A stretch of 64,000 nt of DNA from Magallana gigas. Its lineage: Eukaryota. Positions 35,217 to 64,000 of this stretch are shown one piece after another. The stretch spans positions 3,224,001 to 3,288,000 of the forward strand of contig NC_088861.1 in the NCBI RefSeq assembly GCF_963853765.1, in the 5' to 3' direction. How positions within the stretch are numbered: position 1 is the first letter of the stretch; the number at the start of each line of letters is the position of its first letter. The notes beneath the pieces were generated by a model. The model made no database searches and had not been told where the DNA came from. It saw nothing but the letters and a program-made list of their open reading frames with translations. The position numbers were made by a program, and so were the translations under genes.

Positions 35217-38200
35217 ATGATACGAACTCTAGTTTTAGATCTATATTTTGTTGTCTTGCTGATCTACAATGGTGTATTGAAAATTTCAGGTAAGTGTGTA
35301 GCTTTCATTATCGCAGAATGAATTGGGGTGTGGAATGAGGCCGGCTGATCAACCATTGTTTATTTAAAATACACTACAGCTCAGCATTATTCATTCACAA
35401 ACCTGTACCTAGTCTTTCAGATCCTTAAATAGCTGCTTGTTTGAAATTTTAAAAAGCATAAACAGTAGAAAGTTGTTCATAACTTTATGATAACTCGGCT
35501 GATTTGTTAAAACAAATAAACAGATGCAAAGTCTTCATCAGACTTAATTGGAAACCGGAAGTAAAATTGCCTAACACATTATCCAGAATCAATTTTTTTT
35601 TATGTTGACAACCTGTAATAAGTTGCATCTTTCTCTTCGGTCTTTTAGTTGTAACCTTAAGAGAAAAATGTGATTTTGTTAATAAACTTTTTAGTGCTTG
35701 TGATAACATATTGATTATGTGGGTCCACTTTCGTTTTGATTTGTCGATCTTAAGGATTTCTCGGTAGTTATTTAATTATGCAAATTTGCACAACATTAGC
35801 ATAATTCATATGGTTCTTAAAATTAGATTCATAATTACCATCTACCAGTTAATTAACTGTTGATATTTTGCCCTTTATGGTTTTGACTTATTTACTCAAA
35901 ATATGTTGAATCAAAAATGCATTTAAAAATCTGACTGATGTGCAGAATTGCATACTAGTCAGTAACACTACTTTAAATAATGTAAAACATTAAAAGAATA
36001 CATAAAATTTTAATGATAAAAATTTTATACAACAAACGGTCCGTATACTAGTAAGCCATATGACAATTTTTTTCTGTCTGATACTGGACCATATGAGCTG
36101 ATGCGATACATTAACATACAGGCATTTGATTTAATAAATATATTATATATGTCGACATCACATATATACATGCAATATTTATTGTATGCAAAAAAGCACT
36201 GATCTACATAAAGTTAATTTGTTAACCTGAGCAAACTACATGTAATCCCAGCAGTTTTGTATTTTTCAACAATAAAAATCGGTGTTTTTTGTGCTTCACG
36301 CGGGTACTAGTAGCTTGCATTACAGAAAAATATTTCATTGCTATGTTACTTACATATACCTTCATTTTCCAAATGCCGCACAAAAAGAGAGCTTATACGC
36401 TCGTATTTACATCTATCTTTAAATCATTCCATCAATTAGTATTGAGTAAGAGTACGTTTATCATTTATGTTATAAATAAGATAAAACAAAAGAAACAACC
36501 AATTTTCCAAATGTATGAGGATTACCAACTTGGGAGTCAATGGTCAGTTCGCGAAAGTCTGTGGGTGTGCTCATTGTAGCTCTATCTTTGATCGACCAAG
36601 AAATAATCCAAAGAAAGTTAACAGCAAAAGCTAAAAAAAGACATTAAAGGACCATGTAAAAATTCATCTTGGTAGCTACTAGAAGTAAACTTGTCATTAA
36701 AAAGGTTAACAATGCATCCAAAAGCAGTTTAGAATGCATGCAGTCTTACACCGGCAGCTAGCTTATTTCACTGGATAGCATACATGTATATTAATTACTG
36801 TCCTGTCATGCATGTATGAATTACAACTCTTTAACAAAACTATCGTAAGATCTATCACAGGGCATATCTTAGGATTTTCATAAGATCTGACTTATGACAA
36901 CAATAAGAATCATCAAATCCGTTGCACAAAACTATCAGACAATTCTAAAGTTACACTTCATACTTGCGTATGCTATCTTTTTATTGCAAAATGTTAAAAA
37001 AGGACTAAAAGTCTAACAAAGCTGTTTTCTTTTTGCTTATTTTTGTTTTGTTTTATGCTCGTGTATGATATAAATGTTTATGTGTTATTAATATGCTCTG
37101 AAATAATAATTGTTTTTTGCACAACGTGAACATTTTTTACCATTGGTAGTGGTGTTACTGTTAAACTAAGCTGTTTACATATTGCAAAAGTTGGTCTAAT
37201 GAACATTGGCATAAATAAATAAATATGAATTAGACCATAGATGCATATCAAAGTTTTACTCTGCACAAACAGTCTGTTTGTTCGAATTCAGTTATGACCA
37301 TCAGATATGATACTTTTGTGAAACAGGAATGGTGTGATCTAAATTTTGGTCTCAAACTTAGTCATAAGATAGTTCTGTGAAACCAGTCCCCTAATCGTAA
37401 GATATAGAGGAAAATAGCTCTTTTTTAAAGAATCTTTTAAATACAAGTATGTACAATGTAATATTAATTTTCAGGAACAAAGTCATGTCCGAAAACAGAC
37501 CTTCATGGTAAGTATCTTATAATTTTTGTTGCAAACATAAGTCGTTAGTCTCTTACATGGCTAAAAACAATTGTAAGCCGTTCGCATTTTCCTTGGTCAA
37601 AAGTTCGTGTTCTTAGTAAAATGTACAAGTACGAGTACATAAACCAAATAGCGTTTAATATGTCAAACTGTTTTTGCCTATAACCATGTGTAGTAATAGG
37701 AATGGTCATAGAAAGTAAATTCAACGGAATCTCAAGGAACATATCTTAAAAATTTCAACGAGACATGTATAAAAATTACATAAATAGTTTTGATTTTTAT
37801 TTTCAGTAACCAACATGTGTTCACCAGACAATTTCTTCTCTAACTTTATTTACCTGGATGTCCACAACGCTAGTCTTTACTACCTACAATCGTGTATATG
37901 CACGCTGCACGTGCGTTTTCCTGGAACACTTTACTTTAAGACTTTACAAACACCGCCACCAGATTGTGGATCTGTAATGCACGTGACCAGTAGCGATGGC
38001 AACCAAGTACACGTATTCCACTGTGGAGGGAATACGTCATTTCCTGTAAAAACAAATGATATGATAAACATATCAATTCATAATTTAGGAGAACTGAGTT
38101 ATGATACTTCATACTGTTATGTTATATCACTGGGTCAGTAAATTTACTTGTTTTGTATCAATACTAAGTGAAAACTAAAATACATTCCAATAATTAGGCA

Positions 38201-39454
38201 ATTGATTTGCGCTCTAGGCTGAGGTTAGGTGGTGAAGAAATTGCCCATCATATACACTTAAAATTTCTATTTATGATTTGTTAAGCTATAAACTTTTCTT
38301 TGAACCACTATATTTTAGCTAGTTTTACTATATAATATCTTTACACAAAGCCTTCTTAAAGAGATCAATTAAGTCTTAAAATGATCACGACCACCCAGTC
38401 CTCTTATCAAACGGGAGCTTTATTTTTCTTTCAGCATCAGACAGCGGAGTTGGTACGAATGCTTTCCAGATCATGTGTCCTGATTTGGAGAGACTCACGA
38501 CCACAACTACAACCTCTACTGTGACGTCATCCGCCCCCGCTACCTCCCCCAAACCAACTTCTACAGCTAAGGTCACAGCCTCATTGACCTCAACAAGGCC
38601 TTCCAATATCGCTCCAACAACTGAATCTGAAAGTACAAGTGCTGTTTTAGAAGTCAAGGAATCTGTTGTCAGACAGGATGTACCACGTGAGTCTTCGACG
38701 GTTTACGTTCAGCTTCATAAGAAAGCAAGCACTAGTTGGTTGAAAATTATATTTCATAAAAAGCATTAAATCTAAAAAAAAAATTAAGGCAACATTTTCT
38801 GGTTTTTATTTTGACAGTGGAAGTGATAATCACGGTCGCCATACTTGTTCCGGTGGCATCGATAGGTATCGTGTTAGTATCCATTTACCTTTGGAGAAGG
38901 TAAGCCATGAATCATCATTTCCTTTAGAATGTACTGTGTAGTTAAAATATAATAGAATACCCTATTTCTATACTATTTTTCATAGAAAAATACTTCAGAG
39001 ACTCTTAAGAAATTTGAAGAAAGATCACCGTTTCCGCGAGGAAGCTGTAATAGACGTAGGTGATGGGTTAAAAGAGAATGTCTCTAACCATAGCAACGAA
39101 GATCTGAGCAAAGAAGACAAGACAAAAATATCCGTTGTCAATGTTCGAATTGCTAACACGACGCCAAAAGCACCACGTGTCGTCACACTTCGGAAGTCCC
39201 ATAGCAACAAAAATATCATCGTCCTTTCGTCAGAAAAATCAAGCAGAAAGGCCAACGGAAGTGACGAAGCTGATGACGTAGCATTAGAAGAAAGAAGAAA
39301 CCGACTCCATTGGAAAAGGTCGGAAACCGATAGTGGTTATTTTACAGAAATTCATTTAGGAAGTGGGTCCAAAACAATAATTACAGTTGAAAATCTTCCA
39401 AAATTGCACAACGAAGAACAAATAAAATATGATGATATCCAAACAGAGCTTTGA
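35217..39454 (+). CDS. CUB-like/mucin-stalk type I membrane protein, paralogue 1, about 411 aa; exons 35217-35289, 37475-37507, 37807-38133, 38435-38686, 38818-38899, 38986-39454
   Basis: Signal MIRTLVLDLYFVVLLIYNGVLKIS; 6-Cys exon (VTNMC...CIC...CG...C...C); Thr/Ser stalk; TM VIITVAILVPVASIGIVLVSIYLW-RR. All GT-AG with consistent phases. Confidence 0.85.
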
Positions 39455-39647
39455 ATGAAGTTCATATCGGTGGATCCAAAAAGTGCAAATATGTTGACTA
39501 AAAATGATGTTTCGCAGTGCTACTCTATAATTTACTCAAAATCAATATTTTAAGGTGGAATAACACATCATCACAAGATGGCTGACCGCTGATCGAAACG
39601 ACATATCGTTTTATTAAAAAGATTGTATGGACTGGAATATGTAACTT

Positions 39648-39718
39648 ACTCCATAGCCGAGTGGATAAAGTGTCAGACTTGTCATCCGTACATCCCGAGT
39701 TCGAAACCCGCAGGGGCT
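39648..39718 (+). pseudogene. tRNA-derived remnant or SINE head
   Basis: A-box-like TAGCCGAGTGG and B-box-like GAGTTCGAAACC at tRNA spacing; stems poorly paired. Confidence 0.45.
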
Positions 39719-41795
39719 TTTGTTGTTACTTACTGCAATGATTATTTTAGATACTAGTATTCATTTTTTATCCCCAAACTACAAATTTTACGTTTATTTG
39801 ACATTTGTACAGTTTATTTATCATTATATCTTTCATTATCAAAAAAAAATTCATGTTAATTTGAGTGACTTTTTCCAGGTGTGTAATTCCACCTTAATCA
39901 ATGTATGTACTTTTTAGGCGTAAATATTATAAGTAATATGCTTATTCTCTGGTGACATTGTTCTAATGATATATCCATTTTTTTGATGTTGGCTGTATTT
40001 TATTGTTTATTTCATTTCATTATGAACTATTTTATATTGATGTTTACTGAATATCATCATGAATTAATGTAACTATTTAATATTGTATATTATAGCAAAT
40101 GGTATTTTTCATCAGCATGAAAGAAAAGTGCTTATATGATTACACTATTTTTTTTTAGAGTTATATACATTTGTTATTTTTCTACTGTGCCATGTATGTA
40201 TGTTTTATTTATTTGAAATTTATAAAAATATCTTGTTAACCGTTTAAACCTTCCGACGTATTTTTGTGATCTGGGTGATAATTAATGAGGCTGGCAAAAC
40301 CCCGCTTTGTTAACGGTCGCAAGTAATTCAAAAATGCAAATTCCGTGTATAAACAGCAGAAAATTCGAGGGGATGGAAATATGTGTAGTTTTAAAAATGT
40401 GTTAATATCCATCCATGCGTACGATTCATTTACTTTACCGTCTATTAATCGGAAAATTTGACACTGAATTCCCCGTAAAACTGAACACAAACAAAATATT
40501 CTTTCTCGTATAATCCATAATCATGCACATTAAGCCGGAAATAAAGTGCTTTATTACATGTACTTTGTATCTTGTCAAGACGACGCACATACATGTAATG
40601 TTGATATAAGCCGATTCACGTTTAAAAGATCAGGTAGATGAAAGGAGCCTACAACTTTTTGAAATTTGAGATATGAATTCTTTCAGTGGTGCCTCATAAC
40701 AATAGCTTGCTCTTGTGAAATGTACCGGGCATGATTTTAAGATAAACACATTAAAAAGTAATGACCGTTTTCATCTGCCATTTTCAGTGAAATATGAAGA
40801 AAACAAGCAACAAATTTCGAAATTTTACTGTTTTTGACGAATTAAATAGATAATGCGTACAGTCCCTCTAAAAACGGAGTTTTATAAATGTTAATTCTTG
40901 ATCTGTAAAATGATTTCAATTGAACATAGGTATGGAAAATACTTTTTATAGGATTTCCAATGGAAAGCCAGGAAAATGTCTCATTTTCTATAATTAATGA
41001 TTACATTATAGTCAATAAGTATTTTAAAAGATATATCAAATCAATTATAACATCACAGTGGATCACGCACCAAAAAGACACTAAAATCAATTACTAGATC
41101 TTAAACTTGAATATTTTACTATTTCGACGTTAAAGGACCTACATGTAAATAGTGTAAATGTGTATTGTCCTTACATTGAAATCGTTAAGTACAATAGGTC
41201 CTTATGCCCTAATTAAAGGACATTAATCGGCGAGTACTTAATAGTTAAATGAAACCGACTGGAAAGGTGCTCCTTCGTCAACCGTCCGTTAATCTCATTC
41301 ACAATTAATCTCCGTGTTTGCGCGGAAAAGAGGTTAATCAGCGTTTTATTTATTATATATTTGGGGCATTTTAAATATTTAAATGTATGTTAAGTTGTGG
41401 ACCATGAAATAAGTGTCTATAAGAACGGACCGGCAAATTCCGATCGGGCCGATTGTGTCTTTGTTCAGATCGATGGTTGTAGAGAATGCGCTTATCGAAG
41501 AAAGGAACCAGTATGTAGATTTGACGTCTATTGTTTCGAACAGATCTTCTCTATTGCAAAGGACCAACACTTGCTGTTTAAATAATCCGCCGTGTTAATT
41601 CTGAAATCAAATACGGATCAGTCATAATGCACACCCCTCTGAGCTAGAAAGGGAGTAATGAATGTACGCACCCCGATACGACCAGCGCTGTTTGAGGCTC
41701 GAATGACAATTTTGCTGGAATGATTTTTTAACAACGTTTAGGAATTTAAAAAAAAACCATTTTGTGATTATCAAAGCCGTGATATATAAAAAAGG

Positions 41796-44700
41796 ATGGA
41801 GCTGTTAGTCGCTTTGATTTTCCTATATTTCACAAAAGGTAAGGAATGAAACACTATATTCGTGAATTGATGAAATGCAAAATTTCCGACTTATGGCTAA
41901 TACAGTGGACGGCCGATCAGTTCCGTCGAAATCAATAACAAACCTAAAATCGATGCTCCAAACCGGTTTCTACCTTGCCTTAATGAGCCTTTATTGATTT
42001 ATATCAACACCATATCCAAGTTTTAGAGTTCTTGTATTAATAGTAAAACAGACATTAATAATTCAATTTGTCAAAGTCTTGCAAAAGCACTTGCATGCAA
42101 TATCAATTTATTGTTTTTAGAGCATCGTTCTCTTAAATTCTATTTCATAACAGTTAGAAGAATATTTACTTTTGAAAATACATGTAAAAGTGTGTCAGAT
42201 TCTATAAACGAAAACTCACAAAATGCAGCATTCATTATTTGAAAAATTCATGTATAAATAGCTGTTCGCCATGAATAAAATTAGCTCTTAAACTTTGTGC
42301 CAACTCGCTATGAATGAAATATTTGATTTTGAGGTCTTCGGCCAAATTTACAATGGCGCACCTCTCGAAATTTAAAAACCAAATACTCTTTGAGTAACAC
42401 AACAATGGGTGTCATTAAAGAAACACGCAAACAGTTTGCTTCTTACGCTGTGAATATGTAAACCATCTTTGGCGAACAATGTTGAACTCCGTCAAATTGT
42501 AAATCACGAAAATGACTCTATCCTATTTCCAACTCTTTGAGGGTACCAGAACACCAATTCATCGGACCAAACCATGCTTCAGTTTTCACAGGGGTACTGT
42601 TGTAATGGCCTGTGTATATGTCATTTGCGACAAATAAGAAGTTATTTACTGAGTAAACACTTTTTCAATGCATTTCAGAGGCGTCTTTGAAATCCTTAAA
42701 ACCTTTCAATTTGGATTCGACAGACATTTACTTGTTTGGGAATACGATCTGGTAACTTCGCGGATATCTAAAAGAGAAAAATGTCTTCTTTATGATTTTT
42801 TCATTGTAATATTTTTAGCATCTCCCTGATCAAAAAAGTTCAGACTACCATACCTAATAATTGTCATTGTTTCATTATTATAATCAAAGTACTGAAAATC
42901 CCAGAAAACACCAACTAGCATGATTCGTAATTATACTGTTGTTTGCCTCTGGTTAACGTTCAGGTCATGCTTTGATATAGATTCATCATAGCATTATATG
43001 TTTTGGAACAAAAATTATTTGAATCATGTTGTATTGACTGCCTCTTAGAAAATATGTTGTCAGTTTTTAAGCCAATTTGTAGTACTAGTATTAGAGCGTA
43101 CAATCATCCATTACGATAACTCAAAATCAATATTATCGGCATTGTTAAAAAAACAAGAAAACTTATATTTATCAATAAGCAATGGATTGGGCAGTAAGTA
43201 ACGTATCTCTAAATGGCTGTTTACAGGTGCTGCTCAACTTTCGTTTTGCGCACAGTCTTCTTCGCCTATTCCAGGTAGGATAAAAAACTTGTAGTTATGC
43301 AAACGAAAGTAACAATAACAATTCATTGTATTATTCTTCATCAAATTTGTTATTTCAAATGGTAATCATAAATATGATATTCATATCATTAAAATGAGAC
43401 AAATACAAGATACCGAACTGTGCTCATGTACGATAATTATACGTTGCAACATTGGTATATTTTTAACAGTGGCTACCATGTGCAAACCGACTACCGTTAT
43501 CGGTAACCACGTGGTGATTGACGTCACTGAAGCAGAGGAGAGAATGGTGGATGGTATTAATGCTTGCACCTGTTACCTCACCCCTGTTATAACCAAAGAG
43601 AAAGCTAGACTTTACGTACTCAAACAGAGTTCTCTGGAACCTGGTTATAATGGCTGTGGATCTAGAATCGATGTTATCATCGACAGTACGCAAGAATCTG
43701 GAGTGATTCGAAATGTCTGTTTTTTGAACGGAAATGTAGAGCTACAAAATAACACTATTGGAAATATCTCGTTTGTGAAAGAGTTCTATCCACACGACGA
43801 CAGATACTGTATCGGGCTACGATCAGGTAAATTTATTATATATTTTGTGTTTTTTCAAAATGTCTTAAATATCTATGACTGTGTTTTGTTAAGCAAAGAC
43901 TCTCCCCGGCGTAGTATATCCCTCAAGAAAAACGGGTATCTGAGTTTATCAACCTAAGCAAAAGTTTACTGAAAATCAATTTCCCTTATGCAGTTAAAAA
44001 TTTGCAATGTAAAAACTTAAATGTGACATGTATTACATCTGCAACTCCACAACTTTTTCATGAACATGTTAAGAATTCATAGCATTATTAATAATATCAT
44101 TTCCTAATACCTTCAATTGATGTTATTTTAGACTTCCGATCAAATTTCAAGACTGTTTATTTGTTTGTGATTACCAAAACACGGTATAAGCATGATTATA
44201 GACAATTAATTAGCAAGGAAGAGGAATATCAACCTGATACTAGCTTTTCTTGGGGGAGTGTAGTAGGGTTATATGACTCAGTGATGTAAAGAAAAAAATA
44301 TATGTTGAGGAATATTCTCTGTTGTTGCACAATTAAATGAATTATAATAAGCTTTCAATATCATTTCACTTCCACGTAGATGATTCGGGTGCCACGTTAC
44401 AGGTGCAGTGCTTTGCACCAGGAGAGGAAGCACCGTTCCCAACACGACCCCCCTCTACAACGGGCTCAACGTCTCCTCTTCCCACAGATCCCATTACCAC
44501 CCCGGTTACCAGTGCATCAACACCACCGGTGACCACCGCAAAATATACCACTGCCGCGCCGCCACCTCCTACCACGTCAACTGAAGAAACCACACAATTT
44601 ACCACAGCGAGGGCAACAACGCCCAATCCTACAACAGTTGCACCAATTACGACGAAAACTTCCGACCAAACTACAACACATGAGGCATTTACAACAGAAG

Positions 44701-47700
44701 CTGTATCCATGACCTCTAGGTCAGAGGCAATTACAACTAAATTGCCTTCAAGTACAACGGTAAACACACCTTCATCAACTTTATCACCAGATACCACCCC
44801 CAAAACAACAACCCAGTCCTCTGTTACATCAGAAAAACGCGAAGAAACACACAGTACACAGTCACAGATTACCACAACAACTGCTGATGTTTTAACGACT
44901 GATTCAGCGACAAGTTCAGCGTTAATTGTTTCAACATCAGAACAAACAAGTACATCAACAATAACAACAACAAGATCGCTACCGATAACGACAACATTAA
45001 TTGAAGCTCCAACACCATCACCATCAACCACTGAAACTACGACTACATCATCTAAACTAACAACGCCGGAGCCAACTACATCGATGAAAACAACAACATT
45101 TTCACCAACAACTACATCGACAAAATCTACAACAGCATCACCATCAGCATCAGAACCATCAACAACCACGTCAATCGAAACAACACCATCGCCAACAACA
45201 ACTACATCCATTAAAACAACAATTATAACACCACCACCAACTACATTGATAAAAACAACATCATCACCAGCAACAACATCTACGCCATCAACAACAACAT
45301 CTATTAAATCAACTTCATCTTCACCGCCCATAACTACATCTACCATTATATCAATCATACAATCAACAACAACAACTACATCGATGAAAACAACATCACA
45401 ACCAACACAAACACCAACGACAACTTCATCAATCAATACAACACTATCGACTTCCTCAGCTGCAACAACTCCAATGACAACAACAACAGAAAAATCTGTA
45501 ACAACAAATCCAGCTGATACTGAGGCTCCAATCTCGTCTTCATCTCCTGTTGTAACGAGTACGGCACAAGCTGTCACAACATCTCGGCCCGACACCACAG
45601 CTTCTTCTAATGCAACACAAAGTCCCAACCAAGGGTCGCCGGAAAAGGCAGACGACGGAGTGCCTTGTAAGTCTTTTGATTCCCTTGTGATTTTTTGCCT
45701 ACACATATTTTGTCTCCATATACTAGTACATGCAACACGCATGTATACCCGTTCATGCCTTGGTCATTTTATCTGTTGGAATGAAGATACAACATGATTT
45801 ACATGAAAGAATCAAACATTCACACTGGTGTAAATTTGCATTCTATTCCATATTTGGCAACAATATTTCGACTTTATGAATATTAACAAAGTATTGCAAA
45901 TGAATATCAATCCTTTCTTTAGGTACTAAATAATATCAATCATTTTAACGTGAAGTTTTCCATTCCATTGTATTTTGCATAGCGGAAATGTAATCTTCAA
46001 TGAAGCAATTATATCAGTAAACATGTCGAAATGTGTACTGTGGAATCATTTAAATCCGTGGTGGGGGGGGGGGGGGGGGCAATTTTCATATATTGTCGGT
46101 TTTATGGATGCGTTGGTTTTCAGTTTCAGTAAAAAAACTAACTCTTTCAAAACAAATTTTCGTCGAGGATGTAAATTCGTTGTAGAGCCGAGGACTACCC
46201 ACGAATACCACGAAAATTAAGCCATCACGAATTCTAATATTTCCATAGTATTTCTTTCACCATTATAATCAGATCAATGATACAATTATTGCTATATTTT
46301 TTCCAGTATCCATCATCATTCCTGTAGCAGTGGGCGGGGTCGTGCTTCTTGTCGTCATTGTAGCTGTGTCCGTTTGTATCAGGTAAGTCCAATCACAAGA
46401 AAGGCCAAAGAAAGTAGAAAAATATTGTACTATTACTTTAGAATTTTTAATGTACCACGCATTTAACTGTTTATTACTTCAATAATTCAAACGTAAATAA
46501 ACATGGGTCACACAATGAATTTAACCAATAAACTAATTCAATCGATGTCTAAGGTATTTGTAATTTGCATAATTATGTATGTACTAGTTTGATAATGACA
46601 GTCATATAAGGTATTAATAGTAGGCCTATGTGCTTTTTTTTAAAAATTAAAGTAAGCCAATGTTTAAGATGTTTATTTTCTATAATATAGCAGGAAACAG
46701 AGGAACAGAAAGTACATGCTATAGGAGTGGTAAATGTTAACTATTATAGTTACACGGGGATATTTGGGTTTTAACTGTGTGCCGCGAAAATCACCATTCT
46801 GCTACACTTAATGATTAATTGCGCAGCTTTACTTTTATTTATAGCTAGTTTTATAATTTCTTTTCTGTTTAATTTATTATGAAATAATTTCTTTAAAAAC
46901 CCAACAAATAATAATTATACAGGTAAGATAACAGTTAATTAGAAACATATACGTTGCATCAACATGTAGGCATTAGCTTTGTGTATCATTTGAAAAAGTC
47001 TTACGCAATGTAATTTTTTATCTAAGAACTCATACTGCCTTTCCTTATATTAGCAGACATGAGCTCACATCTAGTTTAAAGTGTAATTGTAGGCCTCAAT
47101 TTATGCCGTATTCATTTCTTTCAGATTACGCAGATAATGTTTCATTTCCTCAAAATTTATGGTAAATCTAGGCGAATTTTTTTTATGTTTTAACCCAGAA
47201 CATGTTTCGTTCTAAAACATGTATATCTATTACCTTTAATTGTTGGCACAGTCTAGAATGTTTTCAGATTAAAAACAAACTTGTATTGCCTGACAAGACA
47301 GTTAAAAGAGTTTCTTTTCCCCTCTGTCTGTCTTTTTCTCTGTTAATGTGTGACCCACCATAGCCATTATAACCAGCAAATGATAGCAACAATCGTTCCT
47401 ACAAGACCAGGATGTGTTTGCACCGTCTAATTGCGTAATAACAGGCTCACATTCTGTGTCGTCCAGGAATTTTTCTAAAACTATTAATTCTGTCGTGAAA
47501 TACTCGGTTTGCCTCGAGAAATCGTTTTTTTTTTACTATTAGCACATCCATTTCACTTCATCTAGGCCTAGTTTAATTCTTCATTATATCAGGACGTTGT
47601 CATTTTTTCTTTTCTTTTTCACTAAGAAGGTATTCGTTAAGGTTTTGGGGAAGGGTTTTTTTTTGGTATAATCAATTACAATCGTTTTGTTCAACGTGAC

Positions 47701-48158
47701 TTTTTAAAATCATTTTCAATACCATTTGAATTACGTATAAGGTAAAATAACAATCATTCCTGAAATTATTGCCTTTTTGTATTCACAATGAAGTTTTCAA
47801 AATGCAGTAAAGTTAACGAGCTAAAATATACATGGACAGATCATAATTGCATTTTATAATAACATTAGATTTTTCAATTATTTCAAATGCAATTAATTTC
47901 AGGCGCGGCAGCAGGGGTGGGGAAACACTTATTGGAATGGCAGAACGGCAGATAAACGACAAATCAACGTACGACAACCCGACATACGAGGACTTCTGGT
48001 ACTCCAACAACGTCACAGAAAAGGATGTAGACACGGACTCCATGATGCAGGAAAAAGACCGAGCCGACAGTACGGAAGATGTAAATCCGGAAAACGAGGA
48101 ACAGGGAGTAGAAGTGAGTCAAGTGAAAGTAGACGGTGATACTTGGACACACTTATGA
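41796..48158 (+). CDS. CUB-like/mucin-stalk type I membrane protein, paralogue 2, about 688 aa; exons 41796-41838, 43227-43274, 43470-43826, 44380-45666, 46307-46382, 47903-48158
   Basis: Signal MELLVALIFLYFTKG; 6-Cys exon (VATMC...CTC...CG...C...C); 429-codon Thr/Ser/Pro exon; TM IIIPVAVGGVVLLVVIVAVSVCI; tail with YDNPTY. Phases are identical to paralogue 1. Confidence 0.85.
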
Positions 48159-51801: not shown

Positions 51802-51947
51802 NNNNNNNNNNNNNNNNNNNNNNNNNNNNNNNNNNNNNNNNNNNNNNNNNNNNNNNNNNNNNNNNNNNNNNNNNNNNNNNNNNNNNNNNNNNNNNNNNNN
51901 NNNNNNNNNNNNNNNNNNNNNNNNNNNNNNNNNNNNNNNNNNNNNNN
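51802..51947. other. Assembly gap (N run)
   Basis: 146 N characters. Confidence 1.
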
Positions 51948-52301: not shown

Positions 52302-52798
52302 AGGGGCATGGTCACGATTTTGGTCAAAAATTATTTTTCCGATTTTAACATTCACAATGCTTCAGAAAGGCATTTTTAATAGGCAACCGAAATTTGAGTG
52401 TCATTTGTTGAGTTATAAGCGAGTTACAGAGCTTGAAATTCTTCGCTATGTAAACAAAGCGTTTGTTTACATTTTGAACTTTGAAGTAAAAATTTCAGTT
52501 TTAAACTTAAAACGAATGTGTTAAACGTTAGGAACTGTTTATCCATGCCTAAAATAAATAAAAAGATAGACAAATAAGCTGGAAAAAGATTTTTTACTGG
52601 TATATTGAACCTATGTAAACAAAAACAGGGCACGAGCCTTGTTTACATGACGAAAAATTGTGAGCCCTTTATCTTGCTTATAACTCTAAGAATCACTCTC
52701 AAATTTTATTTGATTATTAGAAATACCTTATTGAAGCATTGTAAACAATAGAAATCGAAAAATAAAATTTGACCAAAATCGTGACCATGCATGCCCCT
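52302..52798 (+). mobile_element. TTAA-flanked MITE with AGGGGCATGGTCACGATTTTGGTCAA terminal inverted repeats
   Basis: Inverted termini and TTAA at 52298-52301 and 52799-52802. Same family as 57175-58129, in opposite orientation. A TTAA target fits piggyBac- or Kolobok-type elements. Confidence 0.85.
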
Positions 52799-53481
52799 TT
52801 AAAATATCTAATAGTTTCTATATGATCAGATATTTTAAGTAGGAATATCTGTATATATACACAATTTATTTTATGCAAAACGATACACTTGTTAAAACAT
52901 ATTCCATGCTATTAAAATCAAATCTGAGACCATATTATGAAAAAGATGAAAAGAGGACAACCTTAATTCTGGCAATAAAAGAACCGTTAGGGAGTAATCG
53001 TTTCTCCTTCTGATGCTTCAGACGGACAGACAGGGTCTGACAGCGAGAAACAGATTAACAGGGGGAGAAGTCATTAATCCGTGAGACATCCGATGACGAA
53101 TCGACGATTAAGGCATTCGACAGGGAGCTGTCATCCCCTGCACAGGTAACGCGCGCCCAGGTGTAGTGGACAGCCATCAGTGCAGGTTTCCTCACCTGTA
53201 GATCCAGCGCAACGGACGTGCATATCAACAAGCGGACCGACCCCTCCCCGAGCTCTTGTCCATCATTTGAGAGCAGTCACTGTTGAATTAATGCCGTTTT
53301 AACCAGATCCAGAGACTGAACATGTGACAAGACGAAAAAGCGGAAATATTTGTTTCGGGGACTGATTATTTTTCCTCTCCGGTGATGGAACCTTAGATAG
53401 AGGGAGAAATCAGGAAATCTTAGGGGAAACTTAACTTCATTAGAGGACATTCATCCAAACAGAACTTTATTTCTTATCATC

Positions 53482-56400
53482 ATGAGCGTTCCCAAGGAAT
53501 ATCGTGGTCTCCTGTATGTTTCATATGTTCTTCTTCATGTGTTGTGCTTGTTTAATGGTGAGTATTTTATTTACCTTCGCTTCTTTTAATTAATCACTGG
53601 CCTATTTACAAGTATCATTGATGACCATTTACAAATGTTTATAGTATTTCTTTTTACATGAATGATTACCCAAAACATATTTCACCTAACGTTTTGTGTA
53701 TGAATGAAATAAGAATACATTTAGACCGCAGGCAAAATATAGAATACATAAAAAAGTAATGATTTGTTTCGCATTAACCTCGAAATGCGCGATATTTCAA
53801 AGAGAAACTCTGATTTGCATAACAATCTAATTAACATATTAAACATAGGTACAGTACACACAGTCTGTGCTGGTTAACATGTGTCGAAAGCTGTTCAAAG
53901 GAAGTGGTGTACATTTGTGAACTTTTCCCCCTATATTCTAGGAATGGAGACATTCACAATTTGACACAATTCCAAATCTTTTCTGAAACTGATGTGACTT
54001 TATTTCTTTTTTCAAAATTTGACATGATAACCAAGAAAATCGAACGAAAAAACAGTAATACTATTGTACTAAATACCAAAATTACTAATATACCAGGTAT
54101 TTCAATCAAATATCGATTAAATCAATTATATTTTCAAAATTCCAAGAATAAAACAATTTGCTTCAAAGTTCCGGTTGTTCGCTGATTATTTCTTAAATGT
54201 ATTTGTGTTTCTCCGAAAGAATTTCATTTTTTACGAGATTTCACTCGTATTCGGCAGTATTTACGTGAAGTTGGTACAGGGCCGAGAAATAATTAGGGTA
54301 ATGCACTGGAATAGACGATGTTCTTTTCTTGTTCTGGCCAGATCTAATGGAATAAAAACCTCGGCTATTTTCCACTAAACCATTCATAACCCAGGTCGAC
54401 TGGCGTATATCATAGTTAATAACAAAAGCATGTGTGTATTTACTATTTATCTCATGCATCAAACGTGCTTTGAATAATAGTTTGTTCCGCAATGTTATTT
54501 CACTACATGCAATGATATATGGTTCTGCGACTTTGTTCCGCTCTACTTTTGTATGTTCATTTGGTTTCTTCTGAATAATTTTCGCTTTGTTAAAACTTCA
54601 AGCAACAAAATTACATTTTGTCTTGGAGAGGGTTTACATAGGCATACTATAGTAGTCTGTTGCCCAATCCTTTTGAATTATCAATAAAATATGTTTAAAT
54701 TAATTACTTCAAGCAATGAATAAAATCGTTCTGGAGTATGTGTTGGTAAAATCTGTTAAGTTTTAACAGTCTAAAATGATTCATTTATGTTATTGTATTT
54801 AAAAAGAAAGAAAAAAAATCCGTTCCATGTTCCGGCCCTCACGACAACCATTCTTTCACATTTTCAAAGTGTTTTCGGAGACATAAAAACGAAGTAAATT
54901 AACCCGTTAAAAATGTCACCGCTCATAAAGCAGCAAATAACATCTCGAGTCTTGCCCATGGTTTGGTGCAATCAAACTGTCATCCAGTGAATTAGGACAT
55001 TAACTGCCAAAGGCTTGCATGGACTTTGTGCATTAGTGGAGGGACACCTCATCGACGATTTATATGGCGGATGAATAAATAGGTGTAAACATTACGCCCC
55101 AAGGACCCCCAAAAATTAGCAGACGAAGGCTCAACGGATGTTGTAATTATTAAATGACAAATATGAATTATGGCTTAATGAAGTTTTCGTACATATCTTT
55201 TTGAATACACTCACGCGTGAAGGATGCTTGATTAATTGGTCTTAAATTCCCATGTATGTTTCCATCCCTTGATGACTCTACATGTAAAGTTATTCAGACT
55301 CATTTTCATATTCGAAATTCCAATTTTCATTTAATCATTTTATCAGCTACGGAATAAAACCTATCAGGTATCCATATATGAACTCAAGATACATAAGAAT
55401 AGCCATAAAATTTATTCAGGACCAGAATCCGTTTGTATTAATTTTCTCATACTACAGGCGGAAATAAAAAAGAAGATAAATTTAGCCTCCAATAATGAAT
55501 GAGTCACACATTTGCAATGATTTTTTTAAGGGAAAACTAATACACATAAGTAACCGTTACTGCTGGCCCCTTTAGAAGAGACCAACGACCACAACAATTC
55601 TCCTTGTTTTGACCACACTAGCGCCAGTCAAGGCCCCAGTGTTTGGCTGAGTAATATGTTTTGGTCGAGAGTAGGGAGGTTTTTACCAGTGTGTACCAAT
55701 GCCAGTAGGTGACACAGATCGAAGACTATGATTGGGAACACAAATCGCCGGCCATTAACGGTCTCTGTTTACGCGTAAATCCGTCAGGAAGGCCATTCTT
55801 TACATCGTTTCCCAAGTAATCACAACATTCTTGTCACCTTGTAAGGCGTCAACAACTTCTAGAATCTCTTCCTAACAATGCATGTCTTTTACTAGGTTTC
55901 CATTATAATAATGGAATCTTGTCTCCATTTTACCCCCTTATTTTTACAACTCCCAATTTCTTTTCGTAATTTAACAGAGTATGCATGTTTTATTACTATC
56001 ATTATAATGGTTTTCATGACAATGGGATCTTCTATAACTCACAAAATTATTCTTAAATAGTATCTTCAATATATCTTCATAACAATACAAACGTTTACTA
56101 AGATGACTTCATAATAAAAGGGGAATCTTCTACAATACTATTTTTGAATAATATTTTCAATATACTTTCATAACTGTACATGTCAGTTACTTGGTTTTCA
56201 TTAAAATAATGGAATCTTGTATCCATTACCTCTTTTTATCTAAATCTATAACAACTCCTAATGTCCCTTCGTAACAGTGCATATCTCTTTCTATGATGTC
56301 TTATGACAACGGGAAGAATCTATCATAATAATCACCAGTTTTCAAAACTATATATAACATCTTTTTTCTTGATAGGAAATGAACAAAAAATAGAAACTCT

Positions 56401-56606
56401 TTCAATCTTTCAATACTCCCATGTTGTTGTAAATTTATAAGCGGTTGACAATTAGTTGTTCTTTTGTAATTGATTTATTTATTGCTACCCGGTAAATTCA
56501 AAGTTGAAAACATGACAACATTCATTTGGTAAAGTCAACATTGTAGCGAAGTGGAAACATGACCATTAGACTTTATCAATGCATTTTGTGTTTTCTGTCA
56601 TGTTGT

Positions 56607-56644
<38 letters not shown>

Positions 56645-56679
56645 TACAACATGAACATGATAACTAGTGTCATGTTGTA

Positions 56680-56717
<38 letters not shown>

Positions 56718-59700
56718 ACAACATGACAGTTTCTCCTGTGCAGTAAATAAGATTACAATTGCAGTAAAGGGGGCTGCATTTACATTACATAGAGTTTATA
56801 TACGGTGAGTCCCTCATGGTGAAAAATGGCCGTTTGTTGTAGGTATACGCTAGAGGGGAGCGTTAGTTGCCAACGACGCTCTGCTTCTCTTTTTGAAGAC
56901 GCATTGCAGCTGTTTGATATATCCTTGTTATATGAGTAAAGCAGAAGCAGAAACATATAAATATGCATTAGAGTTTTATTAATACCTCCTACTCATTGTA
57001 AGGAGGCAGTCGTAAAAGGTTGAAATATATATATGCCATTAATGGCATGTAAGTAATATTACCGAAGGGAGGGTCGCACACACAGGTATCGGCATATTGT
57101 ACATGTATTATGCATGTATTATGCAAGTAAATTCAGGCGAGTTCATTTACATGTATATGTGAATGAAAACTTAAAGGGGCATGGTCACGATTTTGGTCAA
57201 CTTTTATTTTTCTGTTTTTATTATTTGCAATGCTTTAGGAATACATCTCTAATGATCAAATGAAATTTGGGTGCCAGTCGTTGAGTTTTAAGCAAGATAC
57301 AGGGCGTACAATTCTTCGTCATGTAAACAAGGCTCGTGTCCTGTTTTTGTTTACATAGGTTCAATATACCAGTAAAAAATCTTTTTAAAGCTGGTTTGTC
57401 TATCTTATTATTCATTTTAAGCATAAATAAACAGTTGAGTTTTAAGCAAGATACAGGGCGTACAATTCTTCGTCATGTAAACAAGGCTCGGGTCCTGTTT
57501 TTGTTTACATAGGTTCAATATACCAGTAAAAAATCTTTTTAAAGCTGGTTTGTCTATCTTATTATTCATTTTAAGCATAAATAAACAGTTGAGTTTTAAG
57601 CAAGATACAGGGCGTACAATTCTTCGTCATGTAAACAAGGCTCGGGTCCTGTTTTTGTTTACATAGGTTCAATATACCAGTAAAAAATCTTTTTAAAGCT
57701 GGTTTGTCTATCTTATTATTCATTTTAAGCATAAATAAACAGTTGAGTTTTAAGCAAGATACAGAGCGTACAATTCTTCGTCATGTAAACAAGGCTCGGG
57801 TCCTGTTTTTGTTTACATAGGTTCAATATACCAGTAAAAAATCTTTTTAAAGCTGGTTTGTCTATCTTATTATTCATTTTAAGCATAAATAAAGAGTTCC
57901 TAACGATTAACACATTCATTTTAGGTCTAAAACTGGAATTTTCACTTCAACATTCAAAATGTAAACAAACGCTTAATTTACATAGCGAAGAATAGTAAGC
58001 TCTGTAACTCGCTTATGACTCATCAAATGACACTCAAATTTTGGTTGCCTATAAAAAATGCCTTACTGAAGCATTGTAAAGATTAAAATCGAAAAAATAG
58101 TTTTTGACTAAAATCGTGACCATGCCCCTTTAAATCAGTTGTAGAGTATTTCTGTTGCACTTATGAAAAGTAATTTGTGGGAATTGTTTAATTATACAAA
58201 TGCAATATCCTGTAGAAAAAGACAATTTTGGAAAATTTAAATGCATAAAATAATGTCATTATACAATGCACATGGTGTATATATAAAAGGTGTAGATATT
58301 AAGGTCAATACCATTAAACAATTCCGAGTTAAAGATTTGGATATTAAGGTTATTGTTAACAAATTGACGTTTTTTGTAACCATACCTTTTCTTTCTTATT
58401 TCAGTGTCGTTTGCAAAGAAGTGCCTACACCATGAAGGACCTGGTATGTGTACCCTTCTCTTTCATTTAAACCATTTCAATATTAAAGAAATATACCCAA
58501 AATCCTCACATTAAAGCAATTTCAGAAATTTTGCTACCGGATATCTTACCATACCACAGATAGTTTAACTTACATGTAAAACTATGCTGCTTGGAATTCA
58601 AATTCTGCAATTTTAAAACACGTGAATTTCTCTTAAAGTACAAACCAGAAAATAATCCAGGAAAGTCATGCTAGTATATATATATATACAGCGGGTACCC
58701 CTCTTGTAACATGTACATGTACAGTTCAACATACATGGGTCATGTATTTAGGATGAGACACATTTTGCATGTCGCCCTGTAAACGCTAATATTAATTCCA
58801 AGGTTGAAGATCAAAAACATTCTACTGTGCAGGAAAGTAAGAAAAATGGACAAGAGAAAGGGGCGTAAAGATTTTATAAAAAACAAAAACAAATGGCATA
58901 CACGGTCCTCAATCCCCAAGCCGTGTGGTCATAAATTCCTAGAGAATAAAAGAGCACTTTTCTCGTCGGGGGAGGAATTTGGCTAGACAAGGCTTTATTA
59001 CCCGTTACAGAGTCCTTTGATTCAATATGGAGGTCAACCACATCTTGTCAACTGGTCCCTAATTTAGATTTCTTTCTACATTTTTATTAGGCCAAACCTT
59101 TTTGTTAATCTATGCATGTGAATAAAAGCTTATTATTATTTTTTTATATGTATAAATGTGTTTTATTACATGTACACATTTGAGGAATTTTTGTACGTAA
59201 AATCTACATAGCGTTCACTCTAAGGATACAGTATATTTCAGGGTACAAGAGTCATTGATTATTTGAAATGATTCTTGGGAATTTAGATTGCGAAAAATTT
59301 GACGCAAACCAACATTATAATTGTGTGGACTTTTTTATATTAAAAATTCTGCACGACATAAGCAATTAATAGAAGTAAAATAATATTTACATAAGTATTC
59401 ACTTACGACAAAATTTATGTATGCGGTTACGTGATATATATACTAGTTAATTAAGCTGCATTCTTCAAACGCTTGCCAACATCCCTTAGGGCAATGACCT
59501 AAAGCATTTTTGAATGACACAATTCAGTGAAAATTTGTAGGAGTTCATTATTCTTAATGCACAGTGCATTAACACAACAGCTCTTTGCCAAAGTAGTATA
59601 CATGTATGTACAGATATAATTCATTAATCAGGCTCAACACTACTTTCACTAACGATAATGTCCATATCGTATTTCAACAATGCGCATCCCGATCCCGATG

Positions 59701-62700
59701 TGGCTAACAGAGAACAAAGTAGCTTTCATATTGCTGATGGGATTGGGGAACATAAAAAGGCCTCCCGTCAAAGGGCTTGCGTGGTGGAGGTGACAGTGTT
59801 ACACCAGTTAATGTCCACATATGACAGCTTTGTCTCTGTTCAGCGCTTAAGCTGTTGCTTTGAACCTAAATCATTTTTTGGTCATTATGTGCCTAAGGGG
59901 GACAGACGGACAGTATCGGTCATTGAGTTAACATTTATTTGTCTCTCATCAATATACATCAATTCGGGAATTTCAATTTAGCGGGTCTAAACTTGGAAGT
60001 GCTTAATTAGTTCGTACCTGTTTTTACTCTTAGACGTTAGCTCTCCGTTTTCTTGATTGATGCATGTTTCTTTGCATCGATCAACTCGTTTAGTTTAGAA
60101 CAAAAATAAAGATGTATCATGTCCAGTGGCGTAGCTAGCGCTAGAATGAAGTATAGGCACCAAATACGGCGAGGGGTCTGGGGAACGGAAAACGGATTTC
60201 ATGTTTTATAGAACACACAGGAACAAATTTTAGGCACTTTTCGTACATAAAATTTTGAGTTTTTTTTTAAAGATTTTTTTTTCGTAGTAAAAAGGCAAAA
60301 AAACATTTTTTAATACAATCCAACATTGTTTTCACCAGCAGTCTTGTTATCAAAGTGAATTGCGGGAAGAAGATGGGGAAATAAGATAGGGCAAATGCCC
60401 ATTCGGTTTCATCGTAAAATACAATTTTGAATTTATTTTATCAATTAAATTAATTCAAACTTATTATAATACAAGTTTGCAAAAGCACAATTTCTAAATA
60501 AATTCAGTTTTTATAATGTTTAACAAACGATAGAGAAAATATATTACCTTAAATTCTGGTAGAATCGAACCCACAACATAAAAACCCTACTTATAGAAGG
60601 TTAGCTAATGTCTGGTGCTCTAACTTCTGAGCCATTTCATACACAACAAAGTAAATTGTTTAAATATTACGCGTGCCTTGAACTTTGGCTACGAATTTAC
60701 GGACTTGAATTATTTTTTTCAAAACGTTAAATTGTTGAGATACAAAATGGTATTTTTATTGTATAGTGGGTCATCTCTCCACGTTTTTGTTGATTGAAAT
60801 CGGTTTGTTTTCCATAAAACCTTATTTAGTCTATGAGAAAAATATGGAGCAGAGACTCACTATATAATAGAAAAGACCTTGAAGTTGTAAAAAAAATGAC
60901 ACTATTGGAAGTTTTGATATGCATGTACGTATACGCCTGTTTGAGTCAACATATTCCAAGTATTGAACATATTTAAAGGTTAAAAACCGATGATATGTTA
61001 AATATTTCTTGTTTTAAATATATTTTTTTTAAATATCAGATTTATTCATATTTAAATTTTTCGGTATCTTTTCCGTCCATGCATAAATATTTTACACGCC
61101 TTATCCACCCATCTTCTTACACTAAAGCTATTATCTGTCTCTATAGTTTAGTTTACTATTAAAGGGAAAACATTAAACTTTGTAATTGAATGTCATGATT
61201 AAAAAACAGTTGTAATGGTTATTTTAAATTTTGATAATAATAAGAAAACAGATATATTGCTTTGTTTTTTTTAAGTCGTACATTATGTTACACGAAGTCA
61301 ATTAAAGGCGTCTATATTTATAAGCCGCAAATTTGTCAATGATAGTTGAGATCGCAATATGCCTCGATCTATGAATATGATTTTAAACATTTCATCCAGT
61401 GGTCTTACTTTTGGTTTATTGCCCGACATGTTTTTCACTGATTGACTGCGCCATAATTAGCATCATCGACGTCACATATTTGTGACCTCAAACAATCAGA
61501 GTTTTGAAATAGGGAAAAGAAAGATATTTGCTGTGTGCTTTTTTTTTAATTTTTTTTTTTTTAATTAAATGTGACATTTTAACATTTTTAATTTTTGGTC
61601 TTAAAATCATGTGTAGGCACGTGCCTTAAGTGCCTAACGGCAGCTACGCCACTGAATTGTCATCCTTTTTGTTGTTCATGCAAACTTGCCAAATTTCATT
61701 AGATCTCATTTGTAACGCTATAATTGAAAATATACATTTGTAAATACAGGGTTTGCAAAATCATATAATAATGAAAGTATATGTTTTCATCTTAGGAATA
61801 GATTTCTTTTTAAGGGAACTTGTTTCTCACAATTTAATTTGTATGCCCTTTCACGTGTTTCTTTTAAACGATTCCTCTACCGTATACATCAATCTGATAT
61901 TAGTATACACTTGTACTAAGAATATTCCACTGTATTACTTTATTTAAAACAAGCATGACTTCTTTAACATTCCCTTTTGCATTCATTAACTTACATTATG
62001 AAAACAATATCAGGATCACCTTGAATGTGCGTTTGTGTTGAAACCCATTATACAGCTACTGTATTAGTTTCTTAATTTAGCACTTGTAATGTAAAGAAAT
62101 AACGGGCTTTAATTTTGTTTCCTTTGTATTTTCTAGTCGTGGAGATGTGTACTGACAGTGTAATCCAGGCTCAACATGCAGTCATATTAGAAACTTCTTT
62201 ATTTTCCGGAAAAGGGAACTGTGTATGTACATTCAATGTAACTGGTGATTACCTGGAAATAGGCCATCTTGACTTTCCCGAGCAATGCGGCAATAAGTTA
62301 GACTTCCATCTAGGAGCGGAAGGAAGTCCTCATAGTGACGTTCAGTCTATTGAATGTACCAAAGTCACAGCAGAGTTCAATACAACGGAAGTGAAGGAAG
62401 GAAATGTTCTGTTATCACAAACGGAATTTGGTGCCGCGGAAGCAGGATCATCTTGCGTTTCTATGGAAACGGATCCAAATGGTAAATGAAAATGAAATGA
62501 TCAAAAAGTTAAATTGTGATCGGATTTGTGCTTGGCCATTTCGTAATATTGCTAAAAACTGCAACATTTTCCGAAAATGACTATATTTTAAATTTCCACA
62601 AAATCCCTCTTTTTCTGTTATTCTTTTATTAATCAAAAATGCTTTTTAATTTTGACAGAGTTTGTTTATGTGCACTGCGAGGCTGTTGTAGAAGAGAGCA

Positions 62701-64000
62701 CAAGAACCCTGACTTCAGACACCACTGCAGACAACAAGCTGACTCCTATTTCCATTAAAGATATGTTTCAAGATCAGTCAACTGGGGCGTCAAATGCAAT
62801 TCAGGAACTTCTAAGTAAATCCGGATTAAGTCAGGATAGTATTTTTATGGAACCCAATCTCATACAGACTCAGTCAATCAACTCTCTCAATCTGATGGAC
62901 AAAATGGTCACTCCGGAAATGATAGGTGAAGATATGACTGCTTCAACACCAAGGAGTGTTTCATCAGACTCCACTCCCATGTCAACAAAACAGACCACAG
63001 CTGAAACAACTGTATCTTCTGCAACAGTCCCACAAGAAACATCATTACTCGAAACTACTGAACCAACAACAGTGTCTTCTTCAGTTTCTTCATCTACTAC
63101 TCAAGAAACAACTGCTCAGACTACCAAGGGTTCTGCCATTTCTTCAACTGTTTCACAGAAAACATCTTCAACCTCATCACAAAGGTCTTCTACCACCACA
63201 ACCACTAGTAATCTGACAACACCCGTCGTTGATTCTTCATCTCTCACTTCTACTGTCGCGAGCACCTTGTATTCTTCAACACCAAAACCTGAATCTCATA
63301 CGGATGAACACAGTCTCTCATCATCTACATCATCACCATCAACAACAAGGAGTAGTTCTACTTCAAACCCATCATCAACCCCACAAGCAGTAACACAGGC
63401 AACCAGCTTGAAAGTGGAAAAAACAACAGTTGAAGAGAATGTCACACCAAGTGTACCTCCATCTTCTACAACAGTTTCAAATGAGGTGAAAACAACAATT
63501 TCAACACAAGAGACATCATCTACAACTGCAGCAATAGATGTTACCTCGAGAGACAAAGGTTCAGACACCACAACACAAGAACCTACAACAAAGTCGGTAA
63601 CACTAGATGTGTCACCGACTGTGAAAAGTTCAGACATAACTACAACCATTTTGTCAACAACTGTTCTAGGACTGTCCTCAAAACAGGAAAAATCTACATC
63701 TTCCGCACCAAGCTCAGACCTGACGACATCTGTTTTGTCTTCCACGCCAAAAAGTTTACCCGTCACAGCGTCCCCAGTGGATAATATTCCATTGAAAATG
63801 CCCGAAGAATCAAAGACAACACCATCAGAACCAGCTGAGACGACGACGAAAATATTTCCGACCAAATCTGTAAAAGATACAATTTCAACACCAAGTATGC
63901 TTGAACCATCAACTCCTGAAATTTTATCCACCTCTCAGTACACGTTTTATACCGCACTCCCTGACTTAAACGAGCTCTATTCAGAAGAACTTCAACGCAT
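53482..64000 (+). CDS. CUB-like/mucin-stalk protein, paralogue 3, 3'-partial; exons 53482-53557, 58405-58443, 62137-62481, 62659 to beyond 64000
   Basis: Signal MSVPKEYRGLLYVSYVLLHVLCLFNG; micro-exon VSFAKKCLHHEGP; 6-Cys exon (VVEMC...CVC...CG...C...C). I read the Ser/Thr-rich frame as open from 62659 to the window end; the ORF track omits it because it has no stop. Confidence 0.8.
56595..56729. repeat. 135-bp palindrome whose arms are themselves hairpins
   Basis: CTGTCATGTTGTAAATTTTGAATTTACTGGGTGGGTGTAAATACAAAATTTACAACATG followed by its reverse complement. Confidence 0.85.
57175..58129 (-). mobile_element. TTAA-flanked MITE expanded by an internal tandem array
   Basis: Same termini as 52302-52798; TTAA at 57171-57174 and 58130-58133. 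Confidence 0.85.
57280..57893. repeat. 154-bp tandem repeat, 4 near-identical units, inside the MITE
   Basis: GTTGAGTTTTAAGCAAGATACAG starts at 57280, 57434, 57588 and 57742. Confidence 0.95.
60124..61654. mobile_element. hAT-like non-autonomous element (CAGTGGCGTAGCT termini), probably with nested insertions
   Basis: 13-bp inverted termini CAGTGGCGTAGCT / AGCTACGCCACTG with subterminal TAGGCAC motifs. No clean 8-bp target duplication. Confidence 0.6.
60558..60634 (-). pseudogene. Degenerate tRNA-derived (SINE-head-like) segment
   Basis: Minus strand TGGCTCAGAAGTTAGAGC (A-box-like) and GTGGGTTCGATTCTACC (B-box-like). Confidence 0.35.

Follow-up and report, generated by a model that had tools for sequence, protein, structure and literature searches.

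What kind of protein is encoded by three neighbouring oyster genes that follow one exon plan and share little sequence? The question is raised by a 64,000-nucleotide stretch of the Magallana gigas genome (RefSeq assembly GCF_963853765.1, contig NC_088861.1, positions 3,224,001 to 3,288,000 of the forward strand), hereafter the window, or C9:3224001-3288000, C9 being the same contig. An earlier reading of the letters alone, here called the sequence-only reading, had proposed that the genes, G1, G2 and G3, form an old family of receptors with a CUB-like head of eight cysteines on a glycosylated stalk. Our analysis indicates that they are probably paralogues that diverged long ago within a mollusc family of type I membrane glycoproteins, which are built of an unnamed eight-Cys jelly-roll head, a stalk, a transmembrane segment and a motif-bearing tail and would serve in recognition at the cell surface, linked to endocytosis or signalling. 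Public annotations already contain predictions of these genes, only as uncharacterized proteins, and a literature search by the LOC and XP identifiers of their orthologues found no paper on them. While both the architecture and, broadly, the fold have known counterparts, the eight-Cys module, the exon plan and the expansion of the family are new to description.

All three genes lie on the + strand and have a common exon plan. A signal exon ending in phase 1 is followed by a micro-exon with one Cys (phase 1 to 1), a head exon with six Cys (1 to 1), a Ser/Thr/Pro stalk exon opening with the eighth Cys (1 to 1), a transmembrane exon (1 to 2) and a tail exon. Read directly from the DNA, all described exons have canonical AG/GT borders and these phases. 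The spliced translations of all three genes contain a signal peptide, an N-terminal head, a Ser/Thr/Pro stalk, one transmembrane segment and a cytoplasmic tail. G1 extends over 35217-39454, G2 over 41796-48158, and G3 from 53482 to about 1.65 kb beyond the window end. The identical exon-phase blueprint proposed from the letters alone was thus borne out by splice sites, phases and spliced translations.

The G1 product of 411 residues is encoded by six exons and is 99% identical to its best match in the library search (P0001). The six modelled exons are matched precisely, block for block, by three independent G1 transcript contigs (1.6-1.76 kb) from public sequencing runs. Exon 1 (35217-35289), with the start codon and signal peptide, ends in phase 1; the complementary DNA (cDNA) contigs L073-L075 align over 35076/35087-35290, placing the 5' untranslated region back to at least 35076. 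The micro-exon (37475-37507, 33 nt, Cys 1; also supported by P0001) and the head exon (37807-38133, 327 nt, with VTNMC, CIC and CG) are followed by the stalk exon (38435-38686, 252 nt), which opens with the last strand and Cys 8 and continues into an 83-residue stretch with 39% Ser+Thr. The transmembrane exon (38818-38899, 82 nt) and the tail exon, running to the stop codon (38986-39454), complete the gene. In the 3' untranslated region we observed an optional intron (39551-39893): position 39550 is joined to 39894 in two of the three transcript contigs, and the third reads through to 39665.

The G2 junctions up to the transmembrane exon were all confirmed by joints or loose ends in RNA contigs and raw poly-A reads. 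The first mates of these reads map to the minus strand, the orientation that a conventional stranded library gives for a + strand RNA. Exon 1 (41796-41838, 43 nt, start codon and signal peptide, ending in phase 1) is marked by a loose end before 43225 in run X2 that carries the exon end. The micro-exon (43227-43274, 48 nt, one Cys) is linked to the head exon by the joint 43274|43470 in runs X2, X20 and X21, and the head exon (43470-43826, 357 nt, with VATMC, CTC and CG) to the stalk exon by 43826|44380. The stalk exon (44380-45666, 1287 nt) contains Cys 8 and then a mucin-like stretch of 428 residues with 50% Ser+Thr and 12% Pro, and the loose end GAGTGCCTT before 46307 leads from it to the transmembrane exon (46307-46382, 76 nt). 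Acceptors at 46273 or 46249 were rejected for this exon; they break the reading frame, and RNA places the acceptor at 46307. In the preceding intron, a poly-G-containing segment at 46028-46240 shows very high summed contig depth and many odd joints, and looks like a repeat expressed elsewhere that is not part of G2.

Downstream of the transmembrane exon, the joints 46382|46691 and 46729|47903 in run X2 revealed an extra 39-nt exon (46691-46729), in which translation meets an in-frame stop some 6 nt short of the following junction. The G2 transcripts seen thus encode a form with a cytoplasmic tail of only 11 residues. The tail exon with YDNPTY (47903-48158, its acceptor given by the joint 46729|47903) is coding only when the 39-nt exon is skipped, and no direct joint from the transmembrane to the tail exon was seen in four RNA runs, at low coverage. 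G2 is therefore predicted to be produced also as a tail-less isoform.

The G3 product of 979 residues aligns end to end with the Crassostrea virginica protein XP_022290781.1 (P0014, 965 residues) at 57% identity. Exon 1 (53482-53557, 76 nt, start codon and signal peptide, ending in phase 1) aligns to the N-terminus of P0014, and the micro-exon (58405-58443, 39 nt, one Cys) encodes KCLHHEGP, identical in P0014. A candidate signal exon at 61771-61840 was discarded, as no in-frame micro-exon follows it and the orthologue points to 53482-53557. The head exon (62137-62481, 345 nt, with VVEMC, CVC and CG) precedes the stalk exon, which opens with Cys 8 at 62659, runs to 64000 and continues to 64794, 794 bases past the window end; its stalk comprises 711 residues with 38% Ser+Thr. 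The transmembrane and tail exons, in the same phases as in G1 and G2, lie outside the window (L041:1149-1227 and L041:1386-1650). The first roughly 60 "stalk" residues after Cys 8, encoded within 62700-63050, do not resemble a mucin and hardly differ from those of C. virginica (LTPISIKDMFQDQSTGASNAIQELLSKSG...); they may be a further small conserved element, with no Pfam match. We also considered whether the genes are pseudogenes or artefacts. This is ruled out for G1 and G2 by intact frames, canonical splice sites and transcripts, both genes being expressed, and is unlikely for G3 given its intact frame and full-length orthologue.

What unites the three proteins is the head. In the spliced translations, each mature ectodomain has exactly eight cysteines, spaced C-x10-12-C-x23-27-C-x-C-x19-27-C-x18-22-C-x29-32-C-x14-19-C directly after the signal peptide, and these eight align with those of oyster and abalone members. 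The VxxMC, CxC and CG motifs are found in all three head exons. As the sequence-only reading had remarked, there is little other identity (18-27% in pairwise comparison of the head exons), and blastn among the three genes detected no nucleotide similarity at E<=1e-3. The head exons matched the family profile with E-values of 4e-49 (G2), 8e-47 (G1) and 1.5e-27 (G3), the profile having included these sequences, and independent members matched it at 1e-13 to 1e-27. With E-values of 1e-27 to 1e-49, the likeness among the G1-G3 heads is not due to chance.

The limits of the module were revealed by an abalone protein, Haliotis rufescens P0031 (XP_046363232.2), which contains four tandem eight-Cys units, each composed of a Cys, VxNMC, CxC and four further Cys, and each followed by a Thr/Pro linker. 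The four tandem copies fix the borders of the module at the micro-exon Cys and the first Cys of the stalk exon. The module comprises about 135 residues and extends over three exons, the flanking two of which supply its first and last Cys. P0031 resembles the oyster proteins in this module, the Thr/Pro linkers, the transmembrane segment and the short tail, and differs in having four modules per protein instead of one; it is computer-annotated only.

Is this module a known domain? Pfam recorded no family in the exons, stalks, tails, 37 aligned members or full-length relatives, a sequence profile search of the PDB returned nothing, and the named source proteins are called "uncharacterized" or "mucin-5AC-like". 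The suggestion that the domain is unnamed is therefore upheld for the databases tested. AlphaFold2 modelled the G1 head from a 37-row alignment as an all-beta domain of about 11 strands, with a predicted local distance difference test score (pLDDT) of 85.7 and a predicted template modelling score of 0.81; with only four sequences the pLDDT was 51.7 and the model was unusable. Foldseek searches against the PDB, the ESM Atlas by shape and the Swiss-Prot models gave no clear match. Clusters of the AlphaFold database matched better than any solved structure (template modelling scores 0.55-0.73, E down to 3e-8), most of the matched entries being unnamed. Two of them, which we take to be from Lottia and Pomacea, are named ZP domain-containing proteins and carry the predicted fold at their N-terminus. 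Other matched accessions are presumably mussel, scallop, limpet, snail, brachiopod, annelid and rotifer proteins. On these predicted structures and presumed sources, the fold may be wider in Lophotrochozoa.

The predicted structure suggests a CUB/GOLD-like jelly roll, yet the head fails every sequence-based test of CUB membership that we ran. With hmmscan, the CUB hidden Markov model (HMM; PF00431) matched neither the three head exons (E<=10) nor the 37 family members (E<=1), and the same model finds 67 genuine CUB exons elsewhere in the genome at E<=1e-8. The CUB_2 model (PF02408) likewise had no match in the head exons (E<=10) or the 37 members (E<=1); CUB_2 appeared solely as a language-model neighbour, with scores of 0.79-0.80. 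The nearest named language-model clusters are mostly CUB families, with scores below the 0.9 trust line. When the family alignment (A3) was compared by hhalign with seven single-exon oyster CUB domains (A4), a small CUB profile used without secondary structure, the probability was 0.15% and E was 0.4. The four-Cys, two-disulfide pattern of CUB was not found; instead there are eight conserved Cys, spaced differently from those in the oyster CUB alignment. Compared with CUB domains of known structure (PF00431; Kremen1 5fws, spermadhesin 1spp and MASP-1 CUB2 3pob), the head has no HMM or profile-profile similarity, has eight Cys at other positions instead of four, and lacks the conserved sequence motifs present in the oyster's own CUB domains. 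Also unlike CUB, the module spans three exons, with its outer Cys on the flanking exons. On the other hand, the array member P0109 (A0A8W8JFP7), the head of which is its only globular part, was automatically named "CUB domain-containing protein" by UniProt, so that some other profile method evidently sees a CUB likeness, although Pfam records no domain in this protein (UniRef A0A8W8JFP7_MAGGI). The head may hence belong to the CUB superfamily as a genuine member that has diverged very far, with the family an oyster branch of the CUB-domain receptors, a serious possibility though one that we lean against. The GOLD domain of the p24/TMED cargo receptors (5gu5, 5azw) and the collagen-binding domain of ColG (1nqd) have no sequence similarity to the head. 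GOLD is luminal in the early secretory pathway and ColG is bacterial; neither stands on a mucin stalk and neither has the eight-Cys frame.

How large and how old is the family? A broader family profile, run over the 564-Mb genome, put the count of head exons at 41 or more. Besides those of G1-G3 it matched a G2-like exon at C9:0.61 Mb and 36 exons in an array, and one match was too weak to place. The array lies 12 Mb from the window on the same chromosome, with all of its 36 head exons on the + strand within about 0.9 Mb (C9:14907580-15829756; loci L042-L071). The six Cys are intact in most of these heads; a few are interrupted by stops or lack a Cys. The earlier notion of a family of three was thus correct in that the three genes are real, and understated its size. 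Weak profile matches at 7401-7553, 20830-20982 and 22457-22609 were set aside as non-members, as they lie on the opposite strand of another duplicated gene. Among 1.84 billion representative proteins, an exhaustive HMMER search found only 41 at E<=1e-3. About 20 of these were traced to their source, and all are from oysters (Crassostrea/Magallana, Saccostrea), oyster-derived assemblies or Haliotis; they are named "uncharacterized", except for one abalone "mucin-5AC-like" protein. Multiple stretches were matched in three long proteins of the 41, the abalone P0031 as well as P0018 and P0022, and the latter two seem not to belong to the family.

In the maximum-likelihood tree, G1 pairs with Saccostrea P0007, G2 with C. 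virginica P0008 and G3 with C. virginica P0014, each pair lying at the tip of a branch with a length of 1.6-2.3 changes per site. The four P0031 modules cluster with G3 (support 95/90) and the array forms its own clade (99/95), subject to the warning of the tree tool that long branches may join falsely. The separate orthologues and the long branches imply that G1-G3 are old lineages and not recent tandem copies, in agreement with the age that had been proposed for the family.

A fourth gene, of the G2 type, lies on the minus strand at C9:613730-614086 (L003, L072), 2.6 Mb from G2. Its head exon is 92% identical to that of G2 in nucleotides, with a ratio of nonsynonymous to synonymous substitutions (dN/dS) of 0.14, and the first 77 nt of the stalk also align. 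The introns, remaining stalk, transmembrane segment and tail of the two genes are unalignable, and the copy has its own short stalk, transmembrane segment and tail, a pattern that fits modular evolution of exons starting and ending in phase 1. Among the array head exons, the pairwise dN/dS has a median of 0.75 and exceeds 1 in 12 of 61 pairs, mostly recent duplicates; these are raw estimates over about 110 codons, with a few pseudogenes among the exons. The sequences suggest that selection on the array may be relaxed or diversifying.

Behind the head, the stalks of G1, G2 and G3 comprise 83, 428 and 711 residues, respectively, with 38-50% Ser+Thr. Together with the eight conserved Cys, this composition supports the proposed eight-Cys head on a glycosylated stalk, the stalks being presumably O-glycosylated. 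In each protein, one hydrophobic transmembrane segment is followed by basic residues. The tail of G1 contains IKYDDI near its C-terminus, which resembles the consensus of the immunoreceptor tyrosine-based inhibition motif (ITIM). In G2, YDNPTY is an NPxY motif, the signal of the LDL-receptor and Draper type, which binds adaptors with a phosphotyrosine-binding (PTB) domain and directs endocytosis. The tail of G3 contains DNPLL and then an acidic run, similar to the DxxLL type of sorting signal. Only one of about 63 residues in the transmembrane and proximal tail region of G3, including DNPLL and the acidic run, differs from C. virginica, as against 57% identity overall, which argues for a real function of this tail.

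Similar motifs occur in the tails of the relatives: GNPLY or DNPLY in P0006, P0023 and P0105-P0109, YEEI in P0008, and YTEL-x11-12-YES[IL] in P0107 and P0039. The last of these fits the broad pattern of the immunoreceptor tyrosine-based activation motif (ITAM). P0107 and P0108 have near-identical heads and stalks and different tails, one ITAM-like and the other with NPxY. A tblastn search with the known tails in the 3.3-kb array loci retrieved almost nothing, so that figures for the array tails are drawn from a handful of proteins, either annotated or derived from transcripts.

What might these proteins do? Their architecture and tail motifs make a receptor-like role plausible, and we infer that the cysteines form disulfides, that the head binds a ligand and that the tail motifs are used. 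The stiff, glycosylated stalk would hold the disulfide-locked head off the cell surface, where it would bind an extracellular ligand, and the tail would couple this binding to uptake mediated by clathrin or PTB adaptors or, alternatively, to signalling through a tyrosine kinase or phosphatase. Type I receptors with a head on a mucin stalk include TIM-1/3/4, CX3CL1, CXCL16 and GPIb-alpha. Like the oyster proteins, they have a signal peptide, a globular head, a variable O-glycosylated stalk, one transmembrane segment and a short tail with Tyr motifs, and their genes are often tandemly clustered, as are those of the oyster family. Their heads, however, are IgV, chemokine or leucine-rich repeat domains and that of the oyster proteins is predicted to be the unnamed eight-Cys jelly roll, so the analogy is functional and implies no homology. 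The tails of Draper, CED-1 and MEGF10 combine NPxY, which binds the PTB adaptor CED-6/GULP, with an ITAM-like YxxL/I-x11-YxxL/I. Both motif types also occur in the oyster family, on different members instead of in one tail, and the ectodomains of Draper, CED-1 and MEGF10 differ from those of the oyster proteins in being EMI domains with EGF repeats. By analogy with such head-on-stalk receptors (the TIM family, CX3CL1/CXCL16 and Draper/CED-1) and from what is known of the motifs, surface recognition appears the most likely role.

Several points weigh against this interpretation. The tail motifs are short and can arise by chance, and NPxY is missing from the tail of G1. Since the stop exon is included in all G2 transcripts seen, the NPxY tail may seldom be made, and the G3 model is supported by its orthologue only. 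In addition, the AlphaFold2 model covers the G1 head only and was built with the family alignment, and the array dN/dS values are subject to the limits given above.

The same evidence was weighed against other roles. If the proteins were membrane-tethered mucins that act as a barrier, in hydration or against adhesion, the head would cap the structure and have no specific ligand, and the tails would be sorting signals only. The high Ser+Thr content of the stalks, their length of up to 711 residues and its great variation among paralogues are in keeping with this, as is the name "mucin-5AC-like" given by NCBI to the abalone relative. However, the G1 stalk has only 83 residues and P0008 and P0109 are almost stalkless, while the head is always kept. 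The eight Cys are conserved across the aligned oyster and abalone members, purifying selection acts on the head of the G2 pair, and the array heads diversify yet keep the Cys frame, as expected of a binding surface, so that a purely mucin-like role is improbable. The diversification of the array could instead reflect cell-cell or gamete recognition, at the egg coat or sperm surface, in place of immunity or endocytosis. Tandem expansion and a dN/dS near or above 1 in recent duplicates would suit such a role, and the same predicted fold lies at the N-terminus of the two entries named ZP domain-containing proteins. Pfam, however, shows neither a ZP nor any other reproductive domain in the oyster proteins, and G1 and G2 transcripts come from many runs of several studies, including oyster metatranscriptomes, which counts weakly against this role. 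We consider gamete recognition highly improbable.

The surface-recognition reading could also be extended to an unrecognized mollusc immune-receptor superfamily, in which about 36 fast-evolving array heads are combined with alternative ITAM-like, ITIM-like and NPxY tails, and G1-G3 are old founder lineages. Such a superfamily would work like the paired activating and inhibitory receptor clusters of vertebrates or the Draper-type phagocytic receptors. We regard this extension as unlikely.

An assembly gap of N at 51802-51947 touches no exon or frame of the models. It is flanked by the G2 stop (48158), 3.6 kb upstream, and the G3 ATG (53482), 1.5 kb downstream, and is therefore intergenic, so the finding is unaffected; a noncoding first exon of G3 may lie on its upstream side. 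Intron 1 of G3 contains a 154-bp unit repeated four times with 99% matches (57280-57898), and just downstream of the gap (~52420-52750) open reading frames with a translation similar to that of this unit suggest a related repeat copy there, a possible cause of the gap. In intron 2 of G3, an element of about 1.5 kb between inverted repeats (CCAGTGGCGTAGCTAGC ... GCAGCTACGCCACTG; 60120-61660) looks like a non-autonomous transposon.

Upstream of G1, a segmental duplication (4700-10500 and 18000-27800) contains repeated minus-strand exons of another membrane protein. Its Cys-rich Ephrin_rec_like exon lies at 6915-7253, with copies at 20193-20528 and 21795-22166, and near-identical tail open reading frames are found at 5937-6551 and 19224-19829. 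A Sushi-like and a Thr-rich exon also belong to the duplication, and its plus-strand exons (4785-5096 and 18091-18402) show a weak, sub-threshold match to DoxX_2.

Lacking adaptive immunity, oysters depend on surface receptors from expanded families, and many of these are still annotated as "uncharacterized". For a domain without a name in the tested databases, the borders, the Cys frame, the exon plan and the predicted fold are now defined, and the domain is tied to tails with endocytosis and tyrosine-signalling motifs; this adds a new family for the domain databases. It also provides oyster immunology with a concrete candidate receptor family in the context of OsHV-1 (ostreid herpesvirus 1), Vibrio and Perkinsus. 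Were a barrier or gamete function to prove true, the family would still be a clear case of modular evolution built on phase 1 exons.

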